Below are positions 1 through 37,522 of a stretch of 64,000 nt of DNA, in pieces. A model generated the notes under the pieces. That model saw only the letters and a program-made list of their open reading frames with translations, was not told where the DNA came from and did not search any database. The stretch spans positions 248,001 through 312,000 of IMG/VR virus record IMGVR_UViG_3300038424_000251, one strand, 5' to 3'. Each line of letters begins with the position of its first letter. The stretch's first letter is position 1. The translations under genes and the position numbers were made by a program.

Positions 1-75
1 AATTTGACAAGGGATTTTGGCCGTGATGAGTGAAGCTTGACATTTCTCAAAACAAATGTAAACTGATTTTACAAT

Positions 76-327
76 ATGAAAAAAGTTTACGTTGTAGCAT
101 GGGAAAGCAGGGACGGTAACGGGGTTGAATGGTATCATACACCCGAAGCTGCTGACAAAGCTTTTCACGAAGAAAAGAAAAATTGTGAAATTTTCCGCAG
201 TCGTAATTGGGCAGCTTATCGTTTTGATTTTCCAACAATAATGTCATGTCGCCGGATGATTTCCCATGATGTTGAATGTAACTATCTTAACCATTTGATG
301 TTACCGACAACGATTAAATACCCCTAA
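76..327 (+). CDS. early hypothetical protein
   Basis: ORF directly after promoter at 37. Confidence 0.75.
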   Translation: MKKVYVVAWESRDGNGVEWYHTPEAADKAFHEEKKNCEIFRSRNWAAYRFDFPTIMSCRRMISHDVECNYLNHLMLPTTIKYP

Positions 328-372
328 CAAAGCTTGACATTTGTTAAAACAATTGTATCATGTCATCACAAT

Positions 373-810
373 ATGACAAACACAATTGAATTAAACAAAA
401 ATTTCTTCTTCGGTGGTAACGCAACTTTCACTGTTGAATCAGACGTGACTCACGCGTGGCGAACGTATAAAATTCGCCGCTTCAAGAAAACCGAACGGTT
501 TCATAATCCTTCTTATGGTGTCTTTTTGTTGGCCGGTCCTGACAACGAAAATAGTTACGCGTATATCGGAATGGTTGACAAGGCCACCGGTTTCTTCCGC
601 CTGACATCCAAAAGCAAACGAAATGAAAATTCCTCCGATGTCATTATCTTTAAGTGGGTTATGCAAGGTGTATTTAACGGAATGACGTTAAAAAATGGAA
701 CGATTCACCATGAAGGGAAATGTGGCTGCTGTGGCCGCACTCTAACAGTCCCGGAATCAATTCGCCGTGGTATCGGACCAGAATGTTGGTCAAGGATTTA
801 CGGGGCTTGA
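373..810 (+). CDS. DUF6011-like Zn-finger protein
   Basis: C-terminal CGCCGRTLTVPESIRRGIGPEC; start moved to ATG 373 because the track's TTG start is the -35 box. Confidence 0.75.
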   Translation: MTNTIELNKNFFFGGNATFTVESDVTHAWRTYKIRRFKKTERFHNPSYGVFLLAGPDNENSYAYIGMVDKATGFFRLTSKSKRNENSSDVIIFKWVMQGVFNGMTLKNGTIHHEGKCGCCGRTLTVPESIRRGIGPECWSRIYGA

Positions 811-850
811 CAGAAACAATTTTTTTGGTAAATTGATATTAAATAAAATT

Positions 851-1249
851 ATGGGTAAAATCATTGTTACAAATCCGTTTAATCAAATTGACGAAATGTT
901 TAAGGATTATGTTCGCCCAGCGGAATATAATCAGCCGTTTGATTACTTAATGGCTGTTTGTGGTCGTATTGATTCACCCGGTCCACGGGATGAACGGTGG
1001 GAATACATTCGTGACGCAGGAATGGGATTGATTGAAAGAGTGTTGAAACGTCAACCGATTGGTGCAGGACCACATTATTTTGTTTTTCCTGACCGTTGGA
1101 TGGTACCCGGAGAAGCAATGGAGTTTGAATGTGCATTGCAGGAAAATCCCGACGCGAAAAAGTTCAAACGTGTTTATGTTGTGACGCATCAACCTTATCT
1201 TGTTAGTGGATGTTTACGAGAACAATGTCGAATTGTTCGGAAGGCTTGA
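851..1249 (+). CDS. early hypothetical protein
   Basis: ATG after promoter 807; stop overlaps the next -35. Confidence 0.7.
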   Translation: MGKIIVTNPFNQIDEMFKDYVRPAEYNQPFDYLMAVCGRIDSPGPRDERWEYIRDAGMGLIERVLKRQPIGAGPHYFVFPDRWMVPGEAMEFECALQENPDAKKFKRVYVVTHQPYLVSGCLREQCRIVRKA

Positions 1250-1284
1250 CATTTCTAAAAAGAAATATAAACTACCATCACAAT

Positions 1285-1593
1285 ATGATTAACGTCACTC
1301 TTGAAACGCCCGAATTCAAATCATGGATGCAGGGCATCATCGATAAAAACAGGGCCTACATGGCCGCAAGTTTTCCATCATTGGATGTGCCCACAATAAC
1401 GGCTACCGAAGGCAGTCGATATATTCGTGTCATGCGAGACAATTCCGCTCATGCTTTCATTGACCGCACCAACGGCGACGTGCTTAAACCGGCATCATGG
1501 AAAGCACCCGCCAAACACGCAAGAGGCAACATTTTTGATACTTTTAACGGATTGGGCAGCATGGGACCTTATGGACCGGCGTATCTTCGTTGA
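1285..1593 (+). CDS. conserved phage early protein (KPASWKAPAKHARGNI family)
   Basis: motif AFID..NGDVLKPASWKAPAKHARGNI seen in myophage hypotheticals. Confidence 0.75.
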   Translation: MINVTLETPEFKSWMQGIIDKNRAYMAASFPSLDVPTITATEGSRYIRVMRDNSAHAFIDRTNGDVLKPASWKAPAKHARGNIFDTFNGLGSMGPYGPAYLR

Positions 1594-1762
1594 AAGACGA
1601 AGGCTTGACATTTCTTAAAACAATGGTAAAATTTTCTTACAATAAAGTTTGAGGCCGACTGAAAAGCGCCAAGAGTAAGGGACCAGAGAGTGCGTTGATT
1701 ACTTTATCGTTAAAAAGTGACGCTTGACATTTTCTAAAACTAATATAAATTGTTACTACAAT

Positions 1763-1951
1763 ATGAAAAAACACAAATATTTTGTTCTCGTTGAGGAATC
1801 TGAGTCAATTCCTTCTCCCAAAATTTACGAAATTACAAGCAACGTTCCTCTTATAGAAGAACAAATTGAAAACGTCTTAGTTGATAACAACATTTCTTTT
1901 GTTGACAGCACTTTTCAAATTGTTGACGCCCCAATAAAAATTGAGGCTTGA
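1763..1951 (+). CDS. early hypothetical protein
   Basis: ATG 39 nt after TTG 1724. Confidence 0.7.
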   Translation: MKKHKYFVLVEESESIPSPKIYEITSNVPLIEEQIENVLVDNNISFVDSTFQIVDAPIKIEA

Positions 1952-1986
1952 CATTTCTTAAAAGTAATATAAACTACCGGCACGAT

Positions 1987-2244
1987 ATGACAAAAACATA
2001 TATTCACGAAAACGTTACCTACGGAGCCGCAGGGCGCCGCTGGAAATTCACCGCACCAAATTACGAATACGTTACGCCGCTTATGCCCGGTGGTCGGGCA
2101 ACGGCTGACAAAGTGGCACGCATCATCAATGGTGCTGTGAAACGGTCTGGCACGATGGATAATCTTGGCCGAGTCAATATGCACAAAGTATTTCACGATG
2201 CTGCCAAAGTTCAATCTCGCATCGTCAATCACCTTGACGATTGA
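1987..2244 (+). CDS. early hypothetical protein
   Basis: ATG 39 nt after TTG 1948. Confidence 0.7.
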   Translation: MTKTYIHENVTYGAAGRRWKFTAPNYEYVTPLMPGGRATADKVARIINGAVKRSGTMDNLGRVNMHKVFHDAAKVQSRIVNHLDD

Positions 2245-2281
2245 CGCTTGACAAATTCTAAAACAAGTATAAAATACCATT

Positions 2282-2482
2282 ATGATTTGCCACTACTGTC
2301 AAACTGAATACGACGAAAACGAACGTTGTTGCCCTATGTGTCACCGCACTCCGAGTGACAAAACCGGCGCCGGTAACGGATTGAAACCGAAACCTGTGAC
2401 TGTCAGAATTTCCGGTTTTCCTTTGAAAACCAATGTTTCGCCTAATCCCCCGAATCCGCAACATCGGTTCCACAAGGCTTGA
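2282..2482 (+). CDS. small Zn-ribbon protein
   Basis: CHYC...CPMC; follows promoter 2248. Confidence 0.65.
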   Translation: MICHYCQTEYDENERCCPMCHRTPSDKTGAGNGLKPKPVTVRISGFPLKTNVSPNPPNPQHRFHKA

Positions 2483-2547
2483 CAATTTTTAAAACAAATA
2501 TAAACTGTTTTTGTTGGTTGAAACAAACATAAACAAAAACACAAAAT

Positions 2548-3105
2548 ATGACAAACTTAGTCGCAGAAATTACAAAGGCTCTGACGGCCATTAAAGGAAA
2601 CCAGTTTGTTTCCATTACCTACTTGGCAAAGAAAAGTGGGGAATTGGCCCGTCACACTATCAATGTCGGGTTTTCCTACCACCGAGCGGTTGAAAAATCC
2701 GTTACTGAACTGGAAATTCTCACGGCGGAAAACTCCGCAACGTGGAATGAATTAACCAAACAGGCAGCCGCAAATGTCATGGCCAGCCTCAAAAAGACTC
2801 TGGAGGCACACGCCCGCGGGGAACAAAACGAAGATTACACGAAAAGGGGCCAATACATTCCGATTGGTAACGGCGTGAACTTGAACACCGCCGACAATAC
2901 AATTCAACTTTTCGGATTGTCTCACGCAAAAACGGTATTGGTTGAAGGGATTTACCCGACAGTGAACAGCCGGCCGCTGACGATTGAACAAAACAAAATC
3001 CGCAATATGCTAACCGTCAGCAAGTTCCGCGAGTTCGCTCTTGACTCGTCACAAATCGCACAAGTCAAAGTGAACGGCGACACTTTGGAATTGGTAAGTC
3101 GGTAA
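2548..3105 (+). CDS. early hypothetical protein
   Basis: 185-aa ORF with A-rich leader, followed by a strong hairpin. Confidence 0.8.
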   Translation: MTNLVAEITKALTAIKGNQFVSITYLAKKSGELARHTINVGFSYHRAVEKSVTELEILTAENSATWNELTKQAAANVMASLKKTLEAHARGEQNEDYTKRGQYIPIGNGVNLNTADNTIQLFGLSHAKTVLVEGIYPTVNSRPLTIEQNKIRNMLTVSKFREFALDSSQIAQVKVNGDTLELVSR

Positions 3106-3121
3106 GTTGGTCATATTGTGG

Positions 3122-3153
3122 GAGTTAGGTGGGCTTCGGCTCACCTGACTCTT
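3122..3153 (+). terminator. 13-bp UUCG hairpin (terminator/stabiliser)
   Basis: gagttaggtgggc-ttcg-gctcacctgactc; weak U tract. Confidence 0.55.
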
Positions 3154-3328
3154 GCGGTTGTTTTCAGATAACGTTAAAGGAATCACCGCAGACTCCAGTC
3201 CCCTACTCTCCGGCATCTTTCAGCCACATCGTTTATTATGAGAAAATAATAACATAACTTTAAAAATTGTCAAGCGTTGACAGTGAGGCTTGACAAATTG
3301 AATTTTTCATATAAACTACAATCACAAT

Positions 3329-3484
3329 ATGAAAATACTTTACAATTACTGGCGACAATCATTTAAACATCCATCCCTTACAAGGGAACAACTCCGAAAC
3401 ATTGCGAGGATTGCTAATGTTTCAAGGGGCCGGAACACCAAGGACACAATCGCAAATCTCAAAGTAGCCAGTATCATTGTGTGA
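3329..3484 (+). CDS. small early hypothetical protein (not in ORF track)
   Basis: ATG 39 nt after TTG 3290; MKILYNYWRQ... Confidence 0.6.
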   Translation: MKILYNYWRQSFKHPSLTREQLRNIARIANVSRGRNTKDTIANLKVASIIV

Positions 3485-3526
3485 CGCTTGACATTTGCTA
3501 AAAGAAATGTAAACTTCCATCACAAT

Positions 3527-3841
3527 ATGAAAAGAAAATCTGTTATTTGTAAATCTGGTTTGATGGGATGGCAAGGGAAACTACAAGACCAGTATAAAGA
3601 CTTTACTGAATTTGAATCCTTTTGTCGCATTTACAATAATCACATACAGCTTGGTTACAAGACGCCGGCTTCGGCTTGGCGTGCCAATCCAACCATTCAA
3701 GGTTCAACAAATCCGTCTGACTATCGGAAAGTCGAAAAGACATATCACTGTCAAAACGAAGAGTGTGGTGAACAAGTTTCAAAAACAACGTGGTATAAAT
3801 ATCAGGGATTATGTCCGGAGTGTTTCAGTTTCACTGACTGA
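3527..3841 (+). CDS. early protein with C-terminal Zn finger
   Basis: CQNEEC...CPEC; ATG 39 nt after TTG 3488. Confidence 0.7.
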   Translation: MKRKSVICKSGLMGWQGKLQDQYKDFTEFESFCRIYNNHIQLGYKTPASAWRANPTIQGSTNPSDYRKVEKTYHCQNEECGEQVSKTTWYKYQGLCPECFSFTD

Positions 3842-3962
3842 CACGCTTGACATTTCTTGAATGTTTGATAAATTCAACTCACAATGACAATACGATTTTA
3901 CATTGAACGAAGTACCAACATGGTTCGCATGTCAGTGCGGTTCTACAAACGAAAGTAATGTT

Positions 3963-4205
3963 ATGGAAAACTACACTTTTATTGCTTTGGACCAAGAACC
4001 TGTAAAATGTAACTCCTTCAAGGAAGCTTTTACCGCTATGTTCAATTGGGTTCAAAAACACTTAAACGGTGAAGGTTTATCATATCAAGTGTTGGAAACT
4101 GCTATTTGGATTGAAATAAACGGTCGACCACTTTACTTTTACGATGCCCGTGATAGAGCCATTGACGAGAATATTCTCAAAGATGGAAAACTTATAGAAA
4201 CTTGA
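3963..4205 (+). CDS. early hypothetical protein
   Basis: ATG 3963; stop overlaps -35 at 4202. Confidence 0.6.
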   Translation: MENYTFIALDQEPVKCNSFKEAFTAMFNWVQKHLNGEGLSYQVLETAIWIEINGRPLYFYDARDRAIDENILKDGKLIET

Positions 4206-4237
4206 CAACCCTACAAAAGTCAAGTAAATTTGGTCCT

Positions 4238-4456
4238 ATGAAGGTAAAAATCATAGGGCCTAATCAATCGGAATTGGTAATGGGCAATAAAACTGTTCTT
4301 TTTTCTTACTCAATTCCAGTTGCTGCAAAGGTTGGTAACAAATTTTATAGAACTAACAAATTTCACAGCAAAACTATCAATCATCATATCAATCAATGGC
4401 TAAAAGGTTGCGCTGAACACCGTTCTCAATCATGGTTCAATCAGTTAGTGGAATAA
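4238..4456 (+). CDS. conserved small phage protein
   Basis: VLFSY..PVAA...SKTI.HHIN.WL motif. Confidence 0.7.
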   Translation: MKVKIIGPNQSELVMGNKTVLFSYSIPVAAKVGNKFYRTNKFHSKTINHHINQWLKGCAEHRSQSWFNQLVE

Positions 4457-4504
4457 AACAGTGACGCTTGACAAAGTTCTATTGTGGTATAAATTACAAA
4501 TACT

Positions 4505-4717
4505 ATGAATCCTTTTTTAATTGGAGCTACCATTCTTGTTTGGTGTTTATTCTTATTCGCCTATCTGTTGTCGGCGATAACAAATGGAAAAAATAATTAC
4601 ATTTGTGACGCATTCATTTTTCTTGTCATTGGTATTTTTTTGACAATTGCTTGTGGTGCTTCGTGGCAACATTTGCATGACACGCCACAACTACCTGCTA
4701 TTGAACAACATAAGTAA
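4505..4717 (+). CDS. small membrane protein (2 TM)
   Basis: two hydrophobic segments; follows promoter 4468. Confidence 0.7.
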   Translation: MNPFLIGATILVWCLFLFAYLLSAITNGKNNYICDAFIFLVIGIFLTIACGASWQHLHDTPQLPAIEQHK

Positions 4718-4763
4718 CGAGGCTTGACGGATTTTTAATGTGGTGTAAACTTTACGCCACAAT

Positions 4764-5102
4764 ATGAAAGATTTTACTACTGCCATTGACGAATTACTCC
4801 AATTTCTCACTGAAAATCCCACACTTTCACACCAACGGCGTGCTCTCGGGACCAATGGAAAATTGGCCGATGTTGAAACGGTGGATAACTGGATTGGAGA
4901 AAAACTTTCCGAAGCTAGTTCAACTTTACTTGACCAAATTCATCAAGAAATTTTTGAGTCTTTACCACAAGAAAGAAAAGACGCAATCATATCTGAAACC
5001 AAAGAATCAATCCCCGTGGATACAAGTGGCAAACCTGAATTGACGCCTGCTTATCTCCGTTCAATAGGTCGCTTAGACTTACTTGAATGGGGAACAGATT
5101 AA
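4764..5102 (+). CDS. early hypothetical protein
   Basis: follows promoter 4724. Confidence 0.75.
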   Translation: MKDFTTAIDELLQFLTENPTLSHQRRALGTNGKLADVETVDNWIGEKLSEASSTLLDQIHQEIFESLPQERKDAIISETKESIPVDTSGKPELTPAYLRSIGRLDLLEWGTD

Positions 5103-5142
5103 GAACGCTTGACATTTCTTAAAATAATGGTAGGTTAATACC

Positions 5143-5376
5143 ATGAAAAAAATCCGATATATTTATTGGGTATCACTTAGCGAGATACTTTGCCGTGAGT
5201 CGGAAAATCCTAAACTATTCCAGTACTTCAGTGGTTCAGCGTGGTATAATTCAATCGCTAACTATCGAATACATCCTGATAGTTTCACCCGTATTTCCAG
5301 AAAAGAAGCAATGAAAAGATACACTGATGCTTTCTCTGCTATAGTTCGTTCACAACGTCATTTAGAGAACGCTTGA
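5143..5376 (+). CDS. early hypothetical protein
   Basis: follows promoter 5109; stop lies in the next -35. Confidence 0.7.
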   Translation: MKKIRYIYWVSLSEILCRESENPKLFQYFSGSAWYNSIANYRIHPDSFTRISRKEAMKRYTDAFSAIVRSQRHLENA

Positions 5377-5406
5377 CTTTCTATAAACATTTGGTAAGTT
5401 AAAGAT

Positions 5407-5694
5407 ATGAAATTTTTCACTATTACCAACGTAGATTTTGCTCAAATTCTTCGAGATTTCCGCAACTACGGAACACCGCATAGCAATCTCCTTCATTCCT
5501 TTGGAAATTTTCATTTGGCCATATCCAATGACCGTGAAGTGTATCATTTGTTTTTCCATTGTGCTGAATTTTATTTCATCATGGAATACATTTACAAAAT
5601 GGAACTGGTACAAGTCGAAGGTGATGTTGAACAATTCAGTTTACAGATGAGCAGACATTTCCCATCGGTTCACATAACACCGTCGAAGGCTTGA
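5407..5694 (+). CDS. early hypothetical protein
   Basis: follows promoter 5373. Confidence 0.7.
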   Translation: MKFFTITNVDFAQILRDFRNYGTPHSNLLHSFGNFHLAISNDREVYHLFFHCAEFYFIMEYIYKMELVQVEGDVEQFSLQMSRHFPSVHITPSKA

Positions 5695-5724
5695 CCTTCA
5701 ATAAAACTTTGGTAAATTGATTAT

Positions 5725-6078
5725 ATGATTATTCCACTCACTTTGAATGAAGAGAAATTCAGTGGAAGGCTATGGTCAAAAGGATTTCTAGCATTTTGTG
5801 ATTCCGTTCTCTCCAAGCTCGGCGCAAGGGGTAGAAGTTGCCGGTTGATAGTTCGCCTCAAAAATCCAAAAAATAAAGGGTTCACCAAAGTTCGTTTACA
5901 GCGTTCCACATCTGGAGATTATTGGAAGTGGTTCATTGACTCCGAACCATTCGCGTCACTTTTTCCATGTCATTCCTGTATTCATTATTTTCATGGCAGA
6001 GTCGTGGACAAACTTATCAATGAAACTTGTCCCAGCGCTATTGAAAATACGGTATGGGTACGAATTGAGAACGCTTGA
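5725..6078 (+). CDS. early hypothetical protein
   Basis: follows promoter 5691. Confidence 0.7.
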   Translation: MIIPLTLNEEKFSGRLWSKGFLAFCDSVLSKLGARGRSCRLIVRLKNPKNKGFTKVRLQRSTSGDYWKWFIDSEPFASLFPCHSCIHYFHGRVVDKLINETCPSAIENTVWVRIENA

Positions 6079-6108
6079 CATTTCTTAAATAAACGGTAAA
6101 CTACTTTT

Positions 6109-6267
6109 ATGAACAGATTATTTCCTAACAACGATGATTTTGATAAGTCATTCAACCGCGCCAGAAACTTCATCATCGCCATTTGGATAATCGGTGTCAT
6201 CGGTTCACTGCCTCTTGTTGGTGCTGGTATCTATGTTGCTATTCACTTTCTTAGTAAAGTGTGGTAA
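6109..6267 (+). CDS. small membrane protein (not in ORF track)
   Basis: MNRLFPNNDD...IIAIWIIGVIGSLPLVGAGIYVAIHFLSKVW after promoter 6075. Confidence 0.6.
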   Translation: MNRLFPNNDDFDKSFNRARNFIIAIWIIGVIGSLPLVGAGIYVAIHFLSKVW

Positions 6268-6272
6268 ACCTT

Positions 6273-6593
6273 ATGGCAAGAATAGTTCTGACAGCAAAAT
6301 CCCGTCAAACACTCAAAGAACTTGGATTTGAAGAAGTTCATTCAGGTTCAGCAATGGGTGGATGGTTTGGTGACGTTTACATACTTGTTTGGGAAAACGG
6401 AACATCATACGTTACTATTCGTGGCGGTAAGCAGGTTAAATTTGAGCTAACCGAATATTGGATTCCTTCGGTAAAGTATATGGCTTATCACGCCTTACGT
6501 CAAGAAATTGGCAGAATGCGTGAAGAAATTGACCGTGTTGAAACATTGTCAGACAGGTTTTTCAAGAAAACCATATTAAACTTAAAGGCTTGA
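6273..6593 (+). CDS. early hypothetical protein
   Basis: ATG 6273; stop lies in -35 at 6590. Confidence 0.7.
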   Translation: MARIVLTAKSRQTLKELGFEEVHSGSAMGGWFGDVYILVWENGTSYVTIRGGKQVKFELTEYWIPSVKYMAYHALRQEIGRMREEIDRVETLSDRFFKKTILNLKA

Positions 6594-6650
6594 CTTTCTA
6601 TAAATATTCGATAAACTGTCTTTGTTAGTTAAAACAAACAATAACACAAT

Positions 6651-6839
6651 ATGGCAAAGACATACACCAGCAAACTTACAGCCGGTAAAGATACCATAAC
6701 GACTACCGTTCGCAAAACCAAGACGTTCATTTATATCCAAAATGAATTGAACGGAAGACGGTTAGGAGAACAAGGTATCCGATTGGAAAACTTTCGTAAA
6801 GAACCTTGGAGATTTGGTTCACCTTCTTCCACCAAGTAA
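6651..6839 (+). CDS. small basic hypothetical protein
   Basis: A-rich leader like that of gene 2548. Confidence 0.65.
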   Translation: MAKTYTSKLTAGKDTITTTVRKTKTFIYIQNELNGRRLGEQGIRLENFRKEPWRFGSPSSTK

Positions 6840-12312: not shown

Positions 12313-12387
12313 GTTTATAAATATTTTTATTAAATTCAATCGCTTGACATTTTTTGTAAATGTGGTATATTTATTTTTACTTGATGT

Positions 12388-12791
12388 GGGCGTGTAATGG
12401 TATCGATTTATCATAACAGTCATACAGAGCATGTAGAGGATTGGTCATCTGTGGCCTCTTAAAAAACGAAGACTAAACTAAATGCTAATCTAAATCGATT
12501 GGTAAATGCTGACTTTGCTTTTGAGGTTAATACCTTTGAGGAAGTCGCTGTAGCGGCCTAGTTTCCGCTCCGTCATGTTGAGTGATTCTCACTAATTCAA
12601 TAATGGCGTAAAACCGTGAGAAAACTGCTTGTGGTTAAAATTACAGGACTGGTTAGATTGGGCAGTTCTCAATCTAGGTTTGATAATTTTCTCAAATTTT
12701 GATATTAAACCGAAGTTTAAAGTTGATAAACATGTAGTGCTGGATGGGTGTAATGGTAAAAACACGGGTTCAATTCCCGTCACGTCCACCA
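12388..12791 (+). ncRNA. ssrA: tmRNA
   Basis: GGGCGTG/CACGTCC-A-CCA acceptor with G3:U70, T-arm acggg-ttcaatt-cccgt, tag ORF 12484-12561 ANLNRLVNADFAFEVNTFEEVAVAA; promoter TTGACA ~12344. Confidence 0.93.
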
Positions 12792-18606: not shown

Positions 18607-18640
18607 GAGTTACTTAAAAACTCAGGTTACAAGTTATAGA

Positions 18641-18677
18641 AAAAATCCGCTGAATTAAAACTCCAGCGGGTTTTTTA
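18641..18677 (+). terminator. intrinsic terminator
   Basis: ccgctg..cagcgg followed by a T tract. Confidence 0.8.
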
Positions 18678-18813
18678 TGCGAAAATAAAAAGGCTTGACA
18701 CTTTCCAAAAGTTTGATATACTTATAACCAGAATGAAGAACATCTTTACATAGATTTCGGAAAATGACAAAATCATTAATTCATTCATTCTATCTTCAAA
18801 TATTCACATTTTC

Positions 18814-18888
18814 GCTTCATTAGTTCAATGGCAAGAACAGGCGCCCCTAAACCGCCTTATAAGGGTTCAAGTCCCTTATGAAGCGCCA
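18814..18888 (+). tRNA. tRNA-like with CUA anticodon (amber suppressor-like)
   Basis: GCTTCAT/ATGAAGC-G-CCA; loop ccCTAaa; C31:C39 mismatch. Confidence 0.65.
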
Positions 18889-19406: not shown

Positions 19407-20502
19407 TCACGATTGAATTCGGAACGCTTTCGAATGAAATCATAATGGTTTGTGTTCATACGGTACGAAACGCCGAAAGGTAGTAGTTGTTCAGTCAACC
19501 GTATCATGTGTGCCGATGTAATGACGGCGTAAGTAAACAACACTATAGTTGTTCACACTATGAATATTTGTTCTTTGTCAGTAGATTTAACGGGGAGTAT
19601 CGTCTCCGTTGGAGTTGCCGCAAGGTGACTTCATAAAGATAAACCGTAGCAATACGGCCAAAGGGATGGCCCCTAACGGCCACTCACCAATCGCAAGGTT
19701 GGACACCGATACAACGAGCGAAATCTGTAAATATCATCCAAAAGATGGTGTTACACTTAAAGCTGGGATGGAAAATGGTATCTGAGGGTAACACTGTAAG
19801 ATATCTACTAACGATGCCGTCGAGCACTACCATCTGCCAAGCGCAACAGTGAGAGTTAAGATTTAAGCAAAGTAGTGAGGTTTGAGGCCAGCAACCAAAA
19901 GCTTCACTACAATCTGATAGAAACCGGCCAAGGCTCATACTGAGGACGGAATCTTGAAAGATGAATGAGTATCCGCAAGAGAAAGTTAGGACTTGTGTGG
20001 CATTTTGTATCTCCAAAAGGTATGAATCCACAGGCACCGCACAAGTTTGTTAGGTTGATATAGCTCAAAGTAGAGCAACTGTATTCAGCACAGTAGGCTG
20101 CCGGAGTCAAATCTGGCTATCTATTAAAAAACGCAAAGCCGGTGCCCGCGATGACTGAAAAAGTCTTAATTCTGGAGCCGCAAGGTAATTCAGACAACCG
20201 TAGCTCGCAAGGTGAAAGTTGTTCGTGTTGAAGGTAACGGAGAGGTTAGCCCCTCTTACTGCCCGCAAGGCAGACGTTAAATGAGACGCGGAATAGGTTG
20301 TCGTCAGGTTGGAAATGCCACCAACTAAATCAGGCAGACTTACCGGATAAACCATACGTTGTCCCGCAACGGTGGATTTGGATGAAGAGGAAGACTATCC
20401 GCAAGGTAGTGATAATCTTAGAAGGCCGGTACACAATGAGGTATTCTCACTCAAAGTAAATCACAAAATTGTCGAGATAGACCTTCGGGGAACGTTTCGT
20501 GA
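19407..20502 (+). ncRNA. giant structured ncRNA, GOLLD-like
   Basis: ~1.1 kb, GC-richer, no + strand ORF, many GCAA/GAAA tetraloop hairpins, promoter 19375, end pairing tcacga/tcgtga, terminator after it, located among tRNAs; family name is from recall. Confidence 0.7.
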
Positions 20503-26532: not shown

Positions 26533-26597
26533 AGATTCAGTAGTTTAGTGGTAGAACAGTCAAATGACAAACGCTGGCTCTAATCCAGTCTGAATCT
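26533..26597 (+). ncRNA. degenerate tRNA-like RNA
   Basis: agattca/tgaatct, D arm, stub gtca-aa-tgac, last arm gctgg-ctctaat-ccagt; no CCA. Confidence 0.5.
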
Positions 26598-26708: not shown

Positions 26709-27395
26709 ATGAATGAAACAATAGTTACAATGTTTGACGATGAACTTAAAAATACAGTTGCTGAAATAAGCGATTTAATAACTATATCAGACGAAATTAT
26801 ACCAGATGAAATTAATGGAGAAAAATATTTTGAGAATCCAAATGGTGTAGAATTTGGACATTGGGTTGCCAATGAATATGTAGAAAAAGTTTTTGAAGGT
26901 ATTGTGTGTGGCGAAAATCCACATTATGACAAGAAGTGTGATGATAACAAACTTGAAATTAAAGTTATTCGAGCATCATCAAAAAAGGTAAGACCAACGA
27001 ATTGTGTAATAAGCTCTCCTACAAAGAACACATTCAATAGTCGTGCATTGAGGTCAATAGATGATGATTTTAGTCATGGACTTGATAAAAATGGTAAATG
27101 TCAATCTTTAAGTAATACGTCATTTCAGCAAACGAACCCATCGGAATTTGATATTTTTATAGGGTTTGTATTTTTCTTGGACAAAGTCAGAGTGTATGTT
27201 ATTCCATCTGAGAATATTGCACATACCATTGGTGAAGTTAGTGATAGGATAAATCTTGTGCCGCAACATAGGAATCCGAAGGAAGGACACCTTTTGTTAA
27301 GAAATATTCACGCTAAGCCAGAAAAATTTATTATGTTCGAATTAATTCATAATAATAATATCTCTCTTAGAAATTTGGGAGATTATTTACAATGA
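26709..27395 (+). CDS. putative PD-(D/E)xK endonuclease
   Basis: YD..KLEIKV..FQQ..FD; overlaps MTase start. Confidence 0.55.
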   Translation: MNETIVTMFDDELKNTVAEISDLITISDEIIPDEINGEKYFENPNGVEFGHWVANEYVEKVFEGIVCGENPHYDKKCDDNKLEIKVIRASSKKVRPTNCVISSPTKNTFNSRALRSIDDDFSHGLDKNGKCQSLSNTSFQQTNPSEFDIFIGFVFFLDKVRVYVIPSENIAHTIGEVSDRINLVPQHRNPKEGHLLLRNIHAKPEKFIMFELIHNNNISLRNLGDYLQ

Positions 27396-28840
27396 ATGTA
27401 GTTGATAAAGACATATCTTCTAAAAAGAAAAGATTAGGACAATTCTTAACACCACCCAATTTAGTAAATTTTTGTTTGGACAAAATTCAAATAAATACCA
27501 ACTTAATAATAGAACCTAGTTGTGGAAATGGTGCATTTTTAAATGCTATAAGATGTGCAACGTCTGATAATCATCAAATTATAGGGATAGAATTAGACGC
27601 AGAATTAGCAAAACAATATACAGGTAAAGAAACAATTTTAGTAAAAAATTTTTATGATTATGATTATGAGTATGATTTTTCCACACCAAGAGATGTTACG
27701 TTTATTGGAAATCCCCCGTTTAGAAGTCCTGCCGCCTCTCTAAAAACACATCGCTCACGCATTCAACAATTGATGGAAATATATTCTATCAAAGGTATAA
27801 AAGAAGAATCTGTGTTTTTTCTAATAAACACGATTCATTTAATTCTTACACATAGGGTTAAAGGATTTATTCATTATATTTTGCCAAAATCCATATTTCA
27901 GAATAATTCTACAAGGTGTGAATCTTTTATATTATTTTTGAAAAAATATGTCAAGTTATTACAGGTTTGGGATATAAATAAATTTCCAGATGTGAATCAA
28001 AAACTTGTTTTCGTATCAATGGAAATTGACAATAACCGTTCTAATAATAATTCATTTAAATATAATGGAGAAATCAAATTGGTTGATGAGTTTTATGGTA
28101 ATAATACACAGTATATAACTTTTCAAAATATATTCAAGAAAACATATTTGGGGTCGGTACCATGTGAAAGTCTATTTTTGTCTATTTCAGATGAATCAAA
28201 AATACAATTTAAAAATAGACTGATCAAAATATTTCATCCAGATACAGTTATTACTTGCGAAACATTGAAAGATTTGCTCACATTTGATGGAAATCAACAT
28301 ATTAGAAGTGTAAAAAGGGGTAGCGCAAACAAAATAAAAAAATTGATTGAATATATACATGAAATAAAAAAATTAAACGGATTCGATTATCATTTATTTG
28401 AAGATTTAGAAAATTATAAACCAATTCAACATAGAAATGAAAAAAGATTTTATTTTAGACATGAATTTTTGAAAAAGTCTTCTTTCGTTTACATATTGAA
28501 TAGTAATCCATGCCCTTCTTTTTATTTTCCGGGTAATCCCAGTTCCAATTCAACGGATTATTTTGGATTTTGTGATTATGATGTAAATAGAAATAGTGGT
28601 CCGGGAGCCAACAGATGTGTGCCAGTAGTTGGAATTGAGGATAATTTGTGTGATGACTTTAAGAAGTATTGGGATAAGAATACAAACGGGCTTCCATATG
28701 GTAAGGTTTTTTCATATATCATATTTATTTCAAAATCGGAATGGTATAAAAATTTAAAAAATATATATCATAGATTTTACTTTGGAATTCCAGAAGTGTT
28801 TGATACATCATTTTTAAAAAATGTTGACATATCTTCTTAA
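27392..28840 (+). CDS. N6-adenine DNA methyltransferase (gamma class)
   Basis: GQFLTP, IEPSCGNGAF, IGNPPF. Confidence 0.88.
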   Translation: MNVVDKDISSKKKRLGQFLTPPNLVNFCLDKIQINTNLIIEPSCGNGAFLNAIRCATSDNHQIIGIELDAELAKQYTGKETILVKNFYDYDYEYDFSTPRDVTFIGNPPFRSPAASLKTHRSRIQQLMEIYSIKGIKEESVFFLINTIHLILTHRVKGFIHYILPKSIFQNNSTRCESFILFLKKYVKLLQVWDINKFPDVNQKLVFVSMEIDNNRSNNNSFKYNGEIKLVDEFYGNNTQYITFQNIFKKTYLGSVPCESLFLSISDESKIQFKNRLIKIFHPDTVITCETLKDLLTFDGNQHIRSVKRGSANKIKKLIEYIHEIKKLNGFDYHLFEDLENYKPIQHRNEKRFYFRHEFLKKSSFVYILNSNPCPSFYFPGNPSSNSTDYFGFCDYDVNRNSGPGANRCVPVVGIEDNLCDDFKKYWDKNTNGLPYGKVFSYIIFISKSEWYKNLKNIYHRFYFGIPEVFDTSFLKNVDISS

Positions 28841-29335: not shown

Positions 29336-29561
29336 AATATCTATGTTAAATAAAGATGATATATATTTTTATGAATTGCTTTGTAAACAAGTAATTCATA
29401 AGAAAAGAAAAAATGCTGTTGCTAAAATGCCCGAAAGAATATATGATAATTTTGATAAAAAGAAAAAATTGCCTGAAAATATAGAAGATAAGTATGAGAA
29501 GGAATTATTTAGGGTGCATGAAGAAAATTTAATGGAAGAAGCTTTTAGGTCAGATGAATAA
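29307..29561 (+). CDS. hypothetical protein
   Basis: LPENIEDKYEKEL. Confidence 0.6.
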   Translation: MMMKEIWKDKISMLNKDDIYFYELLCKQVIHKKRKNAVAKMPERIYDNFDKKKKLPENIEDKYEKELFRVHEENLMEEAFRSDE

Positions 29562-29826
29562 CATATTAATACCTGAACAATTGAAGAAAGTTGTTGGTGG
29601 ACAAAAAGTTTTAACATTGGAATTGACAAGCATATCTGATTTGATTGAACAGCTTTCATCCTTATATCCACAGGCAAAAGAGCGTTTAATCAATGAAAAA
29701 GGAGAATTTAACAGGTTTATCAATGTGTATGTGAATGGTGAGGATATACGGTTTCTAAATTCAATAAACACGAAGATTAATAATGGGGATGAAATTAGCA
29801 TAATTCCAGCTATTGCTGGCGGATAA
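29554..29826 (+). CDS. MoaD/ThiS/Urm1-type ubiquitin-like sulfur carrier
   Basis: FINVYVNGEDIRFL..GDEISIIPAIAGG C-terminus. Confidence 0.92.
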   Translation: MNNILIPEQLKKVVGGQKVLTLELTSISDLIEQLSSLYPQAKERLINEKGEFNRFINVYVNGEDIRFLNSINTKINNGDEISIIPAIAGG

Positions 29827-29869
29827 AACCCTTGTAAAATCAACAAAATAAAGAAAAATCGATGAACGC

Positions 29870-30103
29870 TTGACAGTTTTTAAAAGTCTGATATACTTAT
29901 AACATGATGAGAACAGTATCAACATCGAAAAAAGAGATTTGCCCATTGGCAATTAAAGGACAATGTGTCCTTTCTGTAAAGCCCGTGTGGTATGAATCAT
30001 ATAATCATCAATTTGATAGCATTAATGAAAGGAGCGGCGGATAAGCTCAAGCTAACAAAAAAGATACTTTGAAAACCGCCGCTAAATAAAACGGCGGTTT
30101 TTT
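29870..30103 (+). promoter_or_regulatory. promoter + leader peptide + terminator/antiterminator (attenuator)
   Basis: TTGACA 29870, TATACT 29892, ATG 29904, TAA 30042; agcggcgg 30033 can pair with ccgccgct 30076, competing with terminator 30072-30103. Confidence 0.75.
29904..30044 (+). CDS. leaderless 46-aa leader peptide (not in ORF track)
   Basis: MMRTVSTSKKEICPLAIKGQCVLSVKPVWYESYNHQFDSINERSGG. Confidence 0.7.
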   Translation: MMRTVSTSKKEICPLAIKGQCVLSVKPVWYESYNHQFDSINERSGG

Positions 30104-30114
30104 ATTGTTAAAAT

Positions 30115-30579
30115 ATGAGCAATGAAGTATGGAAAGACATAAAGGGATATGATGGAACATTTCAAATTTCATCGTTGGGTAATGTCAAGCGTGTAAAATC
30201 GCCATCTGGAAAATATTTGGTTTGCAAATTATTGAAAGTTTGTAAACATAAAAATGGATATTCAGGAATATCATTGTGGAAAAATGGAGTTAGAACAAGA
30301 TGTAGGATTAATAGGTTAGTAGCAGAAACGTTTATCGAGAAATCGGATGATAACAAAAAAATAGTTCATCATAAAAATTATAATAGGTCTGATAATAGAG
30401 TAGAAAATTTAGAATGGGTTACACACCTTTATAATTTACAAAATAAAATGCCTAAATATGTCAAAAAGAAAAAGTTACTAATGGATTTATTAAAAATCTT
30501 GAATGAAATGGGGTTATTAAAAGAAAATATTGATGAAACAGAGATATTAAAAAAGATTGAAAGAAGTTGTCGGTTTTAG
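30115..30579 (+). CDS. NUMOD4-HNH homing endonuclease
   Basis: EVWKDIKGYDG.FQISSLGNVK; RLVAETF..VHHKN..RSDN...NLEWVT. Confidence 0.92.
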   Translation: MSNEVWKDIKGYDGTFQISSLGNVKRVKSPSGKYLVCKLLKVCKHKNGYSGISLWKNGVRTRCRINRLVAETFIEKSDDNKKIVHHKNYNRSDNRVENLEWVTHLYNLQNKMPKYVKKKKLLMDLLKILNEMGLLKENIDETEILKKIERSCRF

Positions 30580-31123
30580 TTTATGAAAACATTGGAAGAA
30601 AAGAAAAAAGAGAAATTACAAAAACGAGCTCTTACAAAAGAGTTGGAAGAACATTTGAATTCCAAAGAAATGCAAGACTTGTTAAAAGAATTGGAGAAAA
30701 TGGAAAAATATGTGAAAAAGACACAAAAGGTGTCGGTATAAAATGGTGTTATGAAAAACGATTTGATTGAATTGGTAGGTATAATAGTTAAAATAAATGG
30801 TAAAAAAAGAATTTTTAAAACAGATAACTTTGGATTGCAGGGATGGGCATGGGAAGATGAAACCATAATGGAAAGTGATAGTGGAATAACATTAAATCTT
30901 AAAGATGGAAAAAAGGTATAGAAAACGGAAATTGGTGATAGTTGGATATAAAATTTTTGAATAGGCTTAGAACTCAAACAGTGAGCCTCCGTAAATCGGT
31001 GTCAAATAGTTGAAAAGCTAGAAAAAATCACTTATCGGTCATGGGGTGTTATGAGTAAAATCAGAACCCGGTCTCTGAGATAGATGCAGAGATAATATGG
31101 CGAATGGAATGGTTTTAATTTTT

Positions 31124-31197
31124 AGGCGTCTGGTGTAATGGTAGCCTGATTCTCTCCAAAAGAATTGGTGTGGGTTCGATTCCTACGGCGCCTGCCA
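31124..31197 (+). tRNA. tRNA-Trp(CCA)
   Basis: attct-ctCCAaa-agaat. Confidence 0.9.
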
Positions 31198-31212
31198 ATT
31201 TTAATAGTTAAT

Positions 31213-31290
31213 GCTTCGGAAGCTTAAGTCTGGATAAGCATCAGACTTTTAATCTGATGACAGTGGGTTCGAATCCCACCCGGAGCACCA
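31213..31290 (+). tRNA. tRNA-Lys(TTT)
   Basis: tcaga-ctTTTaa-tctga. Confidence 0.9.
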
Positions 31291-31390
31291 TTCTTCTAGG
31301 AGAAGTCCTATGATATAAATCAGTGATGGTTTAATCACAAACCACTAATCCTATTGGAAGTAATTAATCCGATAGGTAACAATTTTTTAC

Positions 31391-31465
31391 CGTCACGTAG
31401 CTTAAAGGCAAAGCAATCGCTCGATAAGCGATAGAGTGGGATTTCGAGATTCTCCGTGACGACCA
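31391..31465 (+). tRNA. tRNA-Ile(GAT)
   Basis: atcgc-tcGATaa-gcgat; odd T arm. Confidence 0.8.
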
Positions 31466-31471
31466 ATTTTT

Positions 31472-31546
31472 GGGTTCGAAACTTTGATGGTGAAGCTCAC
31501 TCTCTTAAAGTGCTGGAACTGAGTTCAAGTCTCAGCGAACCCACCA
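31472..31546 (+). tRNA. tRNA-Lys(CTT)
   Basis: cact-ctCTTaa-agtg. Confidence 0.85.
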
Positions 31547-31632
31547 ATTTTGTTAACAAAGAAAACTCTATCAATAAATGTTATGCGTTGATATGATTAA
31601 AGAAAGGGGTAAGAGTCCCAAGTATGATATAT

Positions 31633-31725
31633 GGTAGGGTGGTCCGAACGGTTGATGGCGTAAGTCTGTAAAACTTATACCCTTGTTGGTAAACATTGTG
31701 AGTTCAAATCTCACCCCTACCACCA
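31633..31725 (+). tRNA. tRNA-Tyr(GTA)
   Basis: taagt-ctGTAaa-actta, long variable arm. Confidence 0.9.
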
Positions 31726-31735
31726 AAATTTTAAT

Positions 31736-31809
31736 TGGAGTGTCGATCAATGGTAGGTCCTTCGGTTGTTACCCGAATGATGAGGGTTCAATTCCTTCTG
31801 CTCCAGCCA
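31736..31809 (+). tRNA. tRNA-Asn(GTT), atypical
   Basis: ttcgg-ttGTTac-ccgaa. Confidence 0.8.
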
Positions 31810-31862
31810 ATTTTGGGTAAGATTGATACAATGTATTTACCAACTTTTTATATTTATATTAT

Positions 31863-32600
31863 ATGAAAAGAAAAATTAAAAATACAACGATGATATCAGG
31901 TATAGTTTTACTATTCTTGATAGGAATTTCTACATCATTTATTATTGGTAGTAGTAGAAGCCATAAAGTAATAATAAATCCATCATCAAATTCAACATAT
32001 ATTGTGGTTTCAAACAATGTAGTAATACCCTCAAATGTAGTACCTTCAACTAATGTAGTGATATGTTATTCAAATAATATTTTGAGTGATAGTGATATGA
32101 TTGAGATTATGGATACTGGAGCAATACCCAATTTTGACAGAGTGACCAATAATATTTACCGAGGAAGTCAACCAACCGAAGTAGGATGGCGATATTTACA
32201 TAATGTTCTTGGTGTGACTAACGTTGTAAAACTTAATACCGAAAAAGAAGGTTCTGATGAATATGCTATATCATTGGGAATGAAGGTTAATTATTTTCCA
32301 ATTTCATTTGAGGAACAAATGATGGGTCCATCAAGTCAAAAAATAAATTCTATTTTAGCATCAATTACGGATAAAACATTTATTCATTGTGGTAGTGATT
32401 TAAGAACAAAATCAGGAATAGATAAAACATTAGACCGTCAAGGGGGACAAGATAGGACTGGTTTGGTTGTTGCTGAATATCGTTATCTTGTGGATGGTTG
32501 GTCAAAGCAAGATGCAAGACAAGAAATGTTACAGCATGGATTTCACACAAGTCTTGTTGGACTTGATTGGTATTGGAGAGAAAAAACAATAAGACAATAA
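31863..32600 (+). CDS. exported Cys-based (PTP/DSP-like) phosphatase
   Basis: N-terminal TM; NF.RV..IYRGSQP; HC...GQDRTG. Confidence 0.85.
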   Translation: MKRKIKNTTMISGIVLLFLIGISTSFIIGSSRSHKVIINPSSNSTYIVVSNNVVIPSNVVPSTNVVICYSNNILSDSDMIEIMDTGAIPNFDRVTNNIYRGSQPTEVGWRYLHNVLGVTNVVKLNTEKEGSDEYAISLGMKVNYFPISFEEQMMGPSSQKINSILASITDKTFIHCGSDLRTKSGIDKTLDRQGGQDRTGLVVAEYRYLVDGWSKQDARQEMLQHGFHTSLVGLDWYWREKTIRQ

Positions 32601-32608
32601 AATAATTT

Positions 32609-32663
32609 GAGATACGAACAGCAACTAAAAAAATTCATATGCTAAATGAAAAATAAGTATCTC
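32609..32663 (+). ncRNA. CAGCAA-stem RNA copy 2 (minimal)
   Basis: gagatac-ga-acagcaa...gtatctc. Confidence 0.7.
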
Positions 32664-32774
32664 GTAATTTAAGCGCTAGTAGGAAAGTAAATACCTCTAT
32701 TGTAGGTATGTCTAGGAGATAACCTCTGCTCAGACCATCAGTAAAATGAATGGGCGGCTTTCTACAGTATTCGT

Positions 32775-32849
32775 GGTCGTATGTTGTAGTGGTAGCAGTG
32801 GTTGTTTGTCAAACAACGGGCAGGAGTTCGATTCTCCTTATGACCGCCA
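32775..32849 (+). tRNA. tRNA-Asp(GTC)
   Basis: gttgt-ttGTCaa-acaac; G73. Confidence 0.85.
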
Positions 32850-32857
32850 ATTTTAAC

Positions 32858-32932
32858 GGGGAGTTAGCCAAGAGGAAAGGCAGGAATCTGCAAAATTCTT
32901 ATTCGTTGGTTCGAGTCCAACACTTCCCTCCA
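32858..32932 (+). tRNA. tRNA-Cys(GCA)
   Basis: ggaat-ctGCAaa-attct; U73. Confidence 0.9.
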
Positions 32933-32940
32933 ATTTTTGT

Positions 32941-33030
32941 CAGAGTGTAGGAAGGTAACTTGGAAGCCACCCTCGCTTGGAACGAGGCGTCTTTATGACC
33001 CTGTGAGTTCGAATCTCACCACTCTGACCA
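32941..33030 (+). tRNA. tRNA-Pro(TGG) with long variable arm
   Basis: cctcg-ctTGGaa-cgagg; extra gtc-tttat-gac arm. Confidence 0.75.
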
Positions 33031-33036
33031 ATTTAT

Positions 33037-33119
33037 GCCAGAGTAATATATCTAGTTTCTTTCAGATATTTACAGCAAACCATTAGGAAATATTGGTTCA
33101 AATCCGATCTCTGGCGCCA
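33037..33119 (+). ncRNA. tRNA-fused, permuted CAGCAA-stem RNA (copy 3)
   Basis: GCCAGAG/CTCTGGC-G-CCA, T arm attgg-ttcaaat-ccgat, internal atatct..agatat-tt-acagcaa. Confidence 0.7.
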
Positions 33120-33121
33120 AT

Positions 33122-33418
33122 TTCTAGTTCCTTCTGTGGCGGAATGTATCGTAGATGTTACAACGCACGCTATCAGACGCCTTGGGCGGTCTTGTGACAC
33201 AGGAAGGGTAAAGCAAAGTCAGCGAGCCCCGGTTTCGGAAAGGTGGCGCACCGAGACAGACTCGTTTGAGGGCTGGCTACCAATCTATCCCTCATTATAG
33301 GTAAAATCCTATTGCGGTGTTGAGAGTAAGTAGCTCTTACTTGAGCCGTATGGCTGAAATAACCACAACACTTGTGAAGCAACTATACACTTGGTATGTG
33401 TATCAGTTGGGACTAGAA
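33122..33418 (+). ncRNA. orphan ~300-nt structured RNA
   Basis: 10-bp closing stem ttctagttcc/gggactagaa, GC-rich multi-hairpin interior. Confidence 0.65.
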
Positions 33419-33424
33419 AATTTT

Positions 33425-33525
33425 TAGATGCCCACAGCAACACCCAAAAGGTAAAATCAATGCACTATAAAGCAATGACAAGATGGTTCAAACCCATCAA
33501 AACGCCGAAAGGCGTCTGGCATCTA
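33425..33525 (+). ncRNA. CAGCAA-stem RNA copy 4 with T arm
   Basis: tagatgcc-c-acagcaa...gatgg-ttcaaac-ccatc...ggcatcta. Confidence 0.75.
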
Positions 33526-33530
33526 GCTTT

Positions 33531-33606
33531 CCCCGTTTAGCAAATCTGGTGATTGCCTTCGGCTGAAGACCGAATGAGCTCGGTTCGAATCCGGGTACGG
33601 GGACCA
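33531..33606 (+). tRNA. tRNA-Phe(GAA)
   Basis: ttcgg-ctGAAga-ccgaa. Confidence 0.85.
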
Positions 33607-37195: not shown

Positions 37196-37243
37196 ATTTA
37201 AAATTGACAATCCAAAGGATTGTGTTATAATAAAGGAAAGATT

Positions 37244-37358
37244 TCCCGTAGGTGGGTGCAATGCCCATGACGGTAGGTAAAGAAATTGATTCCAATCTTT
37301 TTCTTAATAATCTACAGTCTCACTGGTCACCCTTTCGGGTGTTCGCTTGGCTACGGGA
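37244..37358 (+). ncRNA. orphan closed-stem RNA
   Basis: tcccgtag/ctacggga; promoter TTGACA 37204, TATAAT 37226. Confidence 0.55.
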
Positions 37359-37368
37359 TTTAATTTTT

Positions 37369-37519
37369 ATGAGATTGAAAAGAGTAAAACCGTGCTCGTG
37401 ATATAGACAGACTAGGCCGGCCAAATAAAATTTGGTTGAACACATGAGAAACAAGGGTAAGGAGTCTTAGCGGGAGCCTTTACGAAAGTAAAATCACAGA
37501 ACTATCACATAAATCTCAT
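37369..37519 (+). ncRNA. orphan closed-stem RNA
   Basis: atgagatt/aatctcat; tttac-gaaa-gtaaa hairpin. Confidence 0.5.
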
Positions 37520-37522
37520 TAT

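Follow-up and report, generated by a model that had tools for sequence, protein, structure and literature searches.

We examined a 64-kb stretch of DNA (64,000 nucleotides, positions 248,001 to 312,000 of IMG/VR record IMGVR_UViG_3300038424_000251), hereafter the window. It matches a 365-kb IMG/VR contig and is the translation island of a huge, uncultivated, AT-rich (34% G+C) phage and holds 43 tRNA genes by ARAGORN plus three more by Rfam, a tmRNA, a GOLLD RNA, and a CUA-anticodon suppressor tRNA. No cultured phage is close, as blastn against GenBank phages found relatives only of an HNH gene. Between a sigma-70-type promoter and a block of ten tRNA genes lies a short reading frame followed by an intrinsic terminator. 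The features of this locus, all on the + strand, are as follows.

29870-29897, +: sigma-70-type promoter, TTGACA (29870-75), a 16-nt spacer, and TATACT (29892-97), with a TG at 29889-90 that makes an extended -10 (TGnTATACT, here TGaTATACT); transcription is predicted to start near 29904.
29904-30044, +: leader ORF of 46 codons, with ATG at 29904 (seven bases after the -10), a second ATG at 29907 that is the start conserved in relatives, and stop TAA at 30042-44; the predicted 5' UTR is 0-3 nt and there is no Shine-Dalgarno sequence.
29939-29952, +: hairpin P0 (TTGCC / GGCAA) in the first half of the ORF.
30013-30020, +: segment B (TTGATAGC), which in most relatives pairs with a mid-ORF segment A, or alternatively with A' after the stop codon.
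30031-30040, +: region 2 (GGAGCGGCGG; 8-nt core AGCGGCGG at 30033-40), the 5' strand of the predicted antiterminator, which encodes the last residues and lies inside the footprint of a ribosome on the stop codon.
30045-30058, +: GCTC (30045-48), which can pair with GAGC of region 2, and A' (GCTAACAA, 30051-58), which can pair with B; together these form a hairpin that encloses the stop codon.
30072-30103, +: intrinsic terminator (AAAACCGCCG / CGGCGGTTTT(TT)), comprising region 3 (CCGCCGCT, 30076-83) preceded by an A-tract, the loop, region 4 (CGGCGG, 30092-97), and the T-run (30098-30103).
30115-30579, +: HNH homing-endonuclease gene (NUMOD4 and HNH_3) inserted just after the terminator.
30583-30741, +: small Lys/Glu-rich ORF, which in most relatives starts 9-11 nt after the terminator stem and would be the first gene reached by read-through.
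30955-31123, +: conserved, structured non-coding block directly upstream of tRNA-Trp, with no Rfam match.
31124-33606, +: tRNA block with no recognizable promoter of its own, Trp, Lys(UUU), Ile, Lys(CUU), Tyr, Asn, Asp, Cys, Pro, and Phe, with protein-coding genes interspersed; ARAGORN missed the two Lys genes, which were found by Rfam.

The preliminary description of this locus had reported the promoter, a leaderless 46-codon ORF containing every amino acid in 32 different codons, the complementarity between its last codons and the left arm of the terminator, and the downstream tRNAs, and each of these sequence features was confirmed where it had been placed. None of it looks like chance. The promoter scores 11/12 and belongs to a class found 35 times in the window against 4.4 expected, with 34 of these on the + strand; other members sit 14-15 nt before tRNA-Val, tRNA-Leu, tRNA-Met, and tmRNA. 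The octamer AGCGGCGG at 30033-40 is the exact complement of CCGCCGCT at 30076-83, and these complementary copies are its only two occurrences in 64 kb (0.18 expected). The ORF has all 20 amino acids (P = 0.006 for random 46-residue windows of this phage's proteins) and uses 32 distinct codons (P = 0.05). The terminator, AAAACCGCCG / CGGCGGTTTTTT, ends at 30103, and no further TTGAC-type promoter occurs before 34844, in agreement with the absence of such a promoter noted previously until ~34845. One correction is needed, as the tRNAs are not immediately downstream: the HNH gene, two small ORFs, and the conserved non-coding block lie in between. The HNH gene is absent from most relatives, including L009 (L numbers denote homologous loci on related phage contigs), and is a passenger rather than part of the switch; the repeat CGGTTTT sits at 30095-30101 and 30571-30577.

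Next, we asked whether the arrangement is conserved, a check that had been proposed beforehand. A protein search found two relatives, degenerate and exact DNA patterns found more in metagenomes and viral contigs, and an HMM search found 21 family members, for eight of which we retrieved the DNA. In total, 18 further distinct metagenomic phage loci carry the same module of promoter, near-leaderless ORF, UAA stop, and intrinsic terminator, and the promoter is nearly identical in all relatives. The contigs come from peat and sediment samples. The ORF is under selection to stay open: among nine homologues, the reading frame has 0 in-frame stops, against 22 and 68 in the other two frames. ORF lengths run from 41 to 55 codons, all indels are multiples of three, and every stop is UAA. 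The middle of the peptide varies freely, as in regulatory leader peptides, while M-R/K-T at the start and W-H-K-S-Y-N-x-Q-F-D-S-I ... G-G at the end are conserved. Across the family the ATG lies 6-13 nt after the -10 hexamer, giving a predicted 5' UTR of 0-8 nt with no SD, although the 5' end is itself only predicted. Such starts are the norm in this phage, with the ATG 6-12 nt after the -10 at 15 or more promoters and no enrichment of SD-like motifs (10/72 against an 11% background). The element is absent from a set of one genome per bacterial or archaeal species, which gave no host clue and no prophage copy, and the window has no second copy of the leader.

Selection also acts on the RNA. 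Against L009, the promoter, the first 30 nt, the last 55 nt of the ORF, and the 3' UTR are almost identical, while the neighboring ThiS gene is only about 80% identical. Several helices are supported by compensatory change. Hairpin P0, at codons 11-17, is UUGCC/GGCAA in the window, and the same position forms ACCUGA/UCAGGU in L024 and CUCACC/GGUGAG in L033. A long intra-ORF hairpin, A:B, changes from UAAUGCUGUC:GAUAGCAUUA to CCGUUCUGUC:GAUAGAACGG in L033, amounting to four two-sided changes, and is rebuilt with other sequences in L024, L034, L039, L040, and L041, with two-sided compensatory changes seen in L024, L033, L034, and L041. The hairpin B:A' that encloses the stop codon shows a compensatory U-A to C-G change in L029 and a shifted equivalent in L033, and GAGCG/CGCUC and GAGAG/CUCUC variants appear in L038-40 and L034. 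The window, L027, L028, and L036 lack a strong A:B, and show instead a weaker pairing of a mid-ORF CCUUUC with GAAAGG next to region 2.

We then examined the putative antiterminator. Within the main group, region 2 is invariant, so the 2:3 helix shows 99% pairing but no covariation there. The divergent relatives were informative, as regions 2, 3, and 4 change together. These read, as region 2 / region 3 / region 4:

Main type: GGAGCGGCGG / CCGCCGCUCC / AGCGGCGG
L034: GAGGCGG / CCGCCUC / AGGCGG
L035: GGUGGG / CCCACC / GGUGGG
L036: AACGGCGG / CCGUCGUU / AACGACGG

L039 and L040 differ by GAG:CUC against GGG:CCC. In a swap test, cognate 2:3 duplexes averaged -17.6 kcal/mol against -15.0 for swapped partners (permutation p = 0.0004), and for 9 of 12 distinct left arms the cognate ORF end was the best or second-best partner. 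These changes alter the encoded residues (S-G-G, R-G-G, K-G-G, N-G-G), and what is preserved is the pairing rather than the peptide. There are exceptions: in L024 and in L038-40 a change in region 3 was compensated in region 4 but not in region 2, leaving a 1x1 mismatch, and L041 has lost most of the complementarity. The window's own antiterminator, at 8 bp, is the shortest among the loci with an intact element, and the L009 and L018 versions have the longer antiterminator. The geometry is conserved, with region 2 ending 1-9 nt before the stop codon, inside the footprint of a terminating ribosome, and region 3 starting 20-38 nt after it, outside the ribosome. Terminator hairpin energies range from -10 to -23 kcal/mol, with one compensatory change.

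To compare the two states, we folded the RNAs computationally. Folding of the full-length RNA at equilibrium gave mixed results as a predictor of the switch, with the two states close and the terminator favored in 7 of 9 homologues, including the window, where it dominates (P = 0.96). We therefore used truncated nascent transcripts. In transcripts cut right after region 3, the antiterminator has a probability of 0.81-1.0 in 17 of 18 homologues, both for a free RNA and for a ribosome at every position except the last 6-8 codons, where the probability is 0. This is the behavior proposed in the preliminary description, though these are thermodynamic calculations with a simple footprint mask rather than kinetics. 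The 2:3 duplex is as strong as or stronger than 3:4, and the RNAalifold consensus picks the antiterminator.

The surrounding genes were also compared. In 7 of 7 loci that reach the first downstream tRNA, no promoter lies between the terminator and that tRNA, though L028 has a promoter-like site downstream of the small ORF. tRNA-Trp is the first downstream tRNA in 10 of the 12 loci that extend at least 900 nt past the stop; L026 shows tRNA-Lys first, and L034 shows no tRNA within 930 nt. What lies between varies, being a Lys/Glu-rich small ORF, a conserved non-coding block, or HNH insertions, and in L033 the terminator is followed at once by the non-coding block and tRNA-Trp. Elsewhere in the window, a terminator at 18634-18677 is followed within 20 nt by a new promoter, and other tRNA blocks have a promoter 14-15 nt upstream. 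The terminator at 30103 is not followed by a promoter, and expression of the Trp block is therefore predicted to depend on read-through.

Collectively, these data are best explained by a ribosome-dependent (leader-peptide) transcription attenuator controlling the tRNA-Trp-led block in a family of huge uncultivated phages, a reading we hold as probable but not certain. In this view, host RNA polymerase would start at about 29904 and a 70S ribosome would begin on the (near-)leaderless AUG. If a ribosome occupies the last 6-8 codons or the UAA when region 3 emerges, region 2 would be hidden, region 3 would pair with region 4, and transcription would end after a roughly 200-nt RNA. If no ribosome has arrived, through failed initiation or elongation stalled anywhere upstream, region 2 would pair with region 3 first, the terminator could not form, and polymerase would read on into the small ORF(s), the non-coding block, and the tRNA genes. 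The net logic would be negative feedback, in which poor translation leads to more phage tRNA transcription. The analysis itself establishes the sequence, its conservation, the covariation, the geometry, and the computed folding, whereas the transcription start site, translation of the ORF, termination and its efficiency, read-through, and the dependence of termination on the ribosome are inferred from sequence alone. Timing is a difficulty for this model, as the ribosome must still be on the last codons about 40-60 nt of transcription after the stop codon is made, with no dwell mechanism demonstrated, and the strongly conserved C-terminal peptide is not needed by it. By analogy with the trp 1:2 hairpin, A:B may act as a pause or synchronizing hairpin, and B:A' with GAGC:GCUC may act as a lock that keeps region 2 away and favors termination once the ribosome has passed; both roles are inferred.

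The preliminary interpretation, that a leader with all 20 amino acids acts as a general sensor of tRNA depletion and switches on phage tRNAs when host translation is attacked, was thus supported only in part: its structural core agrees with our data, but sensing of any of the 20 amino acids and a link to host attack on tRNAs remain hypotheses. Amino-acid diversity is high across the family, with a mean of 19.3 types in 27 members, at least 18 in every member, and all 20 in 11 of them, against a null mean of about 16. The variable middle supplies the types missing from the conserved core more often than random segments do (123 against 90.6), and combining one representative of each of ten variable-region types by Fisher's method gives p of about 0.02. 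This statistical support is modest, suggestive but not compelling, as the sequences are related and most of the diversity, including the rare residues (W, H, Y, F, Q), sits in one inherited core that is also held in place by RNA helices inside the ORF. The conserved core is not significantly enriched for the amino acids of the downstream tRNAs (8 of 13 against 5.7 expected). We therefore regard the following as an attractive but tentative possibility: the leader would be an all-codon test message that samples 18-20 amino-acid types on a leaderless mRNA like the phage's own genes, so that a ribosome held up by shortage or cleavage of almost any tRNA, or by any block to translation, would fail to reach the stop codon in time and transcription of the tRNA block would open. 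The phage would gain homeostatic control of its tRNA supply and an inducible answer to host tRNA-targeting defenses such as anticodon nucleases.

Other explanations appear less likely. The same architecture could have a specific rather than general input, with the conserved C-terminal peptide acting inside the exit tunnel as an arrest or slow-termination peptide, as TnaC and SpeFL do, such that dwell time on the stop codon, and with it termination, would depend on a small molecule, on release-factor activity, or on the single conserved Trp codon and tRNA-Trp. The pattern of a variable middle and a nearly invariant last 15-18 residues ending at an invariant UAA is typical of arrest peptides, the simple model needs a ribosome that lingers at the stop, and C-terminal Gly is among the slowest residues in factor-catalyzed release. 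Furthermore, tRNA-Trp is the first downstream tRNA wherever a Trp gene is seen, and there is exactly one conserved UGG. However, much of this peptide block is also constrained as RNA, as L033 and L034 change the residues (DSINE to DRTE or NDKEG) while restoring pairing with segment A, so peptide conservation may be a by-product; no ligand or stalling motif could be identified, and a Pfam search with the peptide family found nothing. We consider this version unlikely, and slightly less likely still an ordinary monocistronic small-protein gene with its own promoter and a somewhat leaky terminator, whose 45-residue product would act in trans, for example as a regulator or anti-defense peptide, with the tRNAs made by constitutive read-through. 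Conservation of the ORF and of both peptide termini, the 21 family proteins called in public data, and the greater equilibrium stability of the terminator in 7 of 9 homologues are compatible with such a gene. It does not explain the concerted changes in three segments, the placement of region 2 inside a terminating ribosome's footprint, the lack of a promoter for the tRNA block, or the almost free evolution of the peptide's middle (L009 and L025 differ by about 7 non-synonymous and 4 synonymous changes).

Least likely is a structured non-coding RNA of about 200 nt, acting as an sRNA or a protein- or tRNA-binding RNA that ends at its own terminator, with an incidental reading frame. Covariation of P0 and A:B, a fold z-score of -2.9, and the almost frozen synonymous sites of the last roughly 18 codons are in its favor, but one frame stays open in all homologues with in-frame indels only, and the start codon sits where this phage places its leaderless starts. 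Rfam searches over 29700-31200, at gathering score and at E <= 10, gave only chance, terminator-like matches to unrelated small-RNA and leader families, with no T-box or known leader. Several smaller ideas were also set aside. A functional link to the upstream ThiS-like gene, whose product also ends in Gly-Gly, was rejected because ThiS is adjacent in only 3 of the loci and absent in the others. An SD-like AAGGAG in region 2 is unlikely to act as a ribosome pause site, because this phage shows no SD usage. A long-range helix between codons 3-5 (CAGUAUC) and GAUACU before the terminator is kept in some relatives and possibly compensated in L025, but is lost in L027, L028, L029, and L033, and we did not rely on it.

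Large phages carry dozens of tRNA genes, the control of which is essentially unknown, and if this element works as proposed, it would be a leader-peptide attenuator that regulates tRNA genes. Full-text literature searches found no such attenuator in front of tRNA genes, in phages or otherwise. It would show that a phage measures the cell's translation capacity directly with a test message and feeds the result back onto its own tRNA supply, linking the question of why phages carry tRNAs to that of how they cope with host defenses that deplete or cut tRNAs. The element is a compact 230-nt cassette, and the family offers a natural set of compensatory variants for dissecting ribosome-RNA polymerase coupling on leaderless mRNAs.

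We then compared the element with known systems. T-box riboswitches share a terminator/antiterminator leader linked to tRNA status, but they bind uncharged tRNA directly, are not translated, and regulate synthetase or amino-acid genes; no T-box model matched here even at E <= 10, and there is no T-box sequence or specifier-loop architecture. In tnaC and speFL, as here, a conserved C-terminal peptide ends at an invariant stop codon, and ribosome occupancy of the stop region would control downstream transcription. Those systems, however, block Rho rather than an intrinsic terminator, their stalled ribosome turns genes on whereas here occupancy of the stop would turn them off, and no ligand is known and no sequence similarity exists here. 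The architecture is that of the classical leader-peptide attenuators of amino-acid operons (trpL, hisL, leuL, thrL, pheL, ilvL) and of pheM-pheST, in which a short ORF in the 5' leader is followed by an intrinsic terminator with a mutually exclusive antiterminator, ribosome position decides between the two, and a pause or synchronizing hairpin is possibly present inside the leader. It differs from these in having no run of one regulatory codon, with 18-20 amino-acid types occurring 1-4 times each, so it is not an amino-acid-specific member; in an ORF that is three times longer and predicted to be leaderless; and in its proposed targets, which are tRNA genes of a phage rather than biosynthetic or synthetase genes. 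Its predicted default without translation is read-through rather than super-attenuation, because the upstream hairpin (A:B) does not include region 2. In predicted behavior, it is closest to general translation-stress attenuators such as bmrB-bmrCD of Bacillus subtilis and related antibiotic-responsive leaders (msrD leader etc.) (PMC4191407). There is no sequence similarity to these, their output is a drug exporter or ribosome-protection factor of a bacterium rather than a phage tRNA block, and their terminator lies within the ORF, whereas here it is 30 nt or more behind the stop and the masked strand is the last codons. In common with the element proposed here, however, they have a leader ORF of similar size with alternative stem-loops and an intrinsic terminator, in which any slowing of the ribosome, rather than lack of one amino acid, gives read-through, and codon choice in the leader modulates the decision.

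We next examined the sequence surrounding the leader. Immediately behind it, at 30095-30582, an HNH (NUMOD4 + HNH_3) gene is inserted exactly after the terminator of the candidate attenuator and is flanked by a CGGTTTT repeat. Of the related phage loci that carry the leader, L041 has an HNH gene at the same site (300-845), and L035 has what looks like a C-terminal remnant (3320-3487). This may be a recurrent homing site. On the other side of the leader, at 29554-29826 (+), a ThiS/Urm1-like ubiquitin-fold protein ending in Gly-Gly (Pfam ThiS, 1e-15) is encoded inside the tRNA island. This protein could be a sulfur carrier for tRNA thiolation. It is adjacent to the leader in only some relatives.

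Further downstream, a conserved non-coding block of about 165 nt lies directly upstream of tRNA-Trp, at 30955-31123 (+) in the window and at 2340-2517, ~380-560, and ~1790-1990 in the related loci L009, L027, and L033, respectively. One hairpin within this block shows compensatory changes (CUCUG/CAGAG, CCCUG/CAGGG, and CUUUG/CAAAG). The block has no Rfam match. It may be an undescribed RNA or a processing signal. Two stretches of G+C-richer sequence were also without an Rfam match. The first, of 500 nt at 33031-33530 (+), lies between tRNA-Pro and tRNA-Phe, contains tRNA-like pieces (acceptor and T-arm-like ends), and folds well (z = -3.2), but has no convincing ORF. The second is found at 37204-37522 (+), where a consensus promoter is followed by about 285 nt of non-coding sequence before tRNA-Ile (37523), and may represent another leader or RNA gene.

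Gene expression appears largely leaderless at 1-6700 and throughout the window, as judged from sequence. At 15 or more TTGACA-type promoters, ATG lies 6-12 nt after the -10 hexamer, often as cacaATATG, and Shine-Dalgarno motifs are not enriched upstream of 72 ORFs. A promoter of the same class as that of the leader is also found within the region 18695-18888 (+), where it is followed by a near-leaderless mini-ORF of six codons that ends in TAG (18733-18753). The CUA-anticodon suppressor tRNA (18814-18888) lies directly downstream. A TAG-terminated mini-ORF in front of the TAG suppressor might be another translation-coupled control.

Three tRNA genes, at 26534-26597, 31213-31287, and 31472-31543 (all +), were found by the Rfam tRNA model but not by ARAGORN, with the last two being tRNA-Lys(UUU) and tRNA-Lys(CUU), as read from the sequence. 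Interspersed with the tRNA genes, at 27392-28840 and 31863-32600 (both +), are genes for an N6-methyltransferase-like protein (a weak Pfam match, with a GNPPF motif) and a tyrosine/dual-specificity phosphatase-family protein. A tmRNA (12388-12791) has its own promoter at 12344, and a full-length GOLLD RNA (Rfam RF02032, 165.5 bits) lies inside the tRNA island at 19988-20453 (+).
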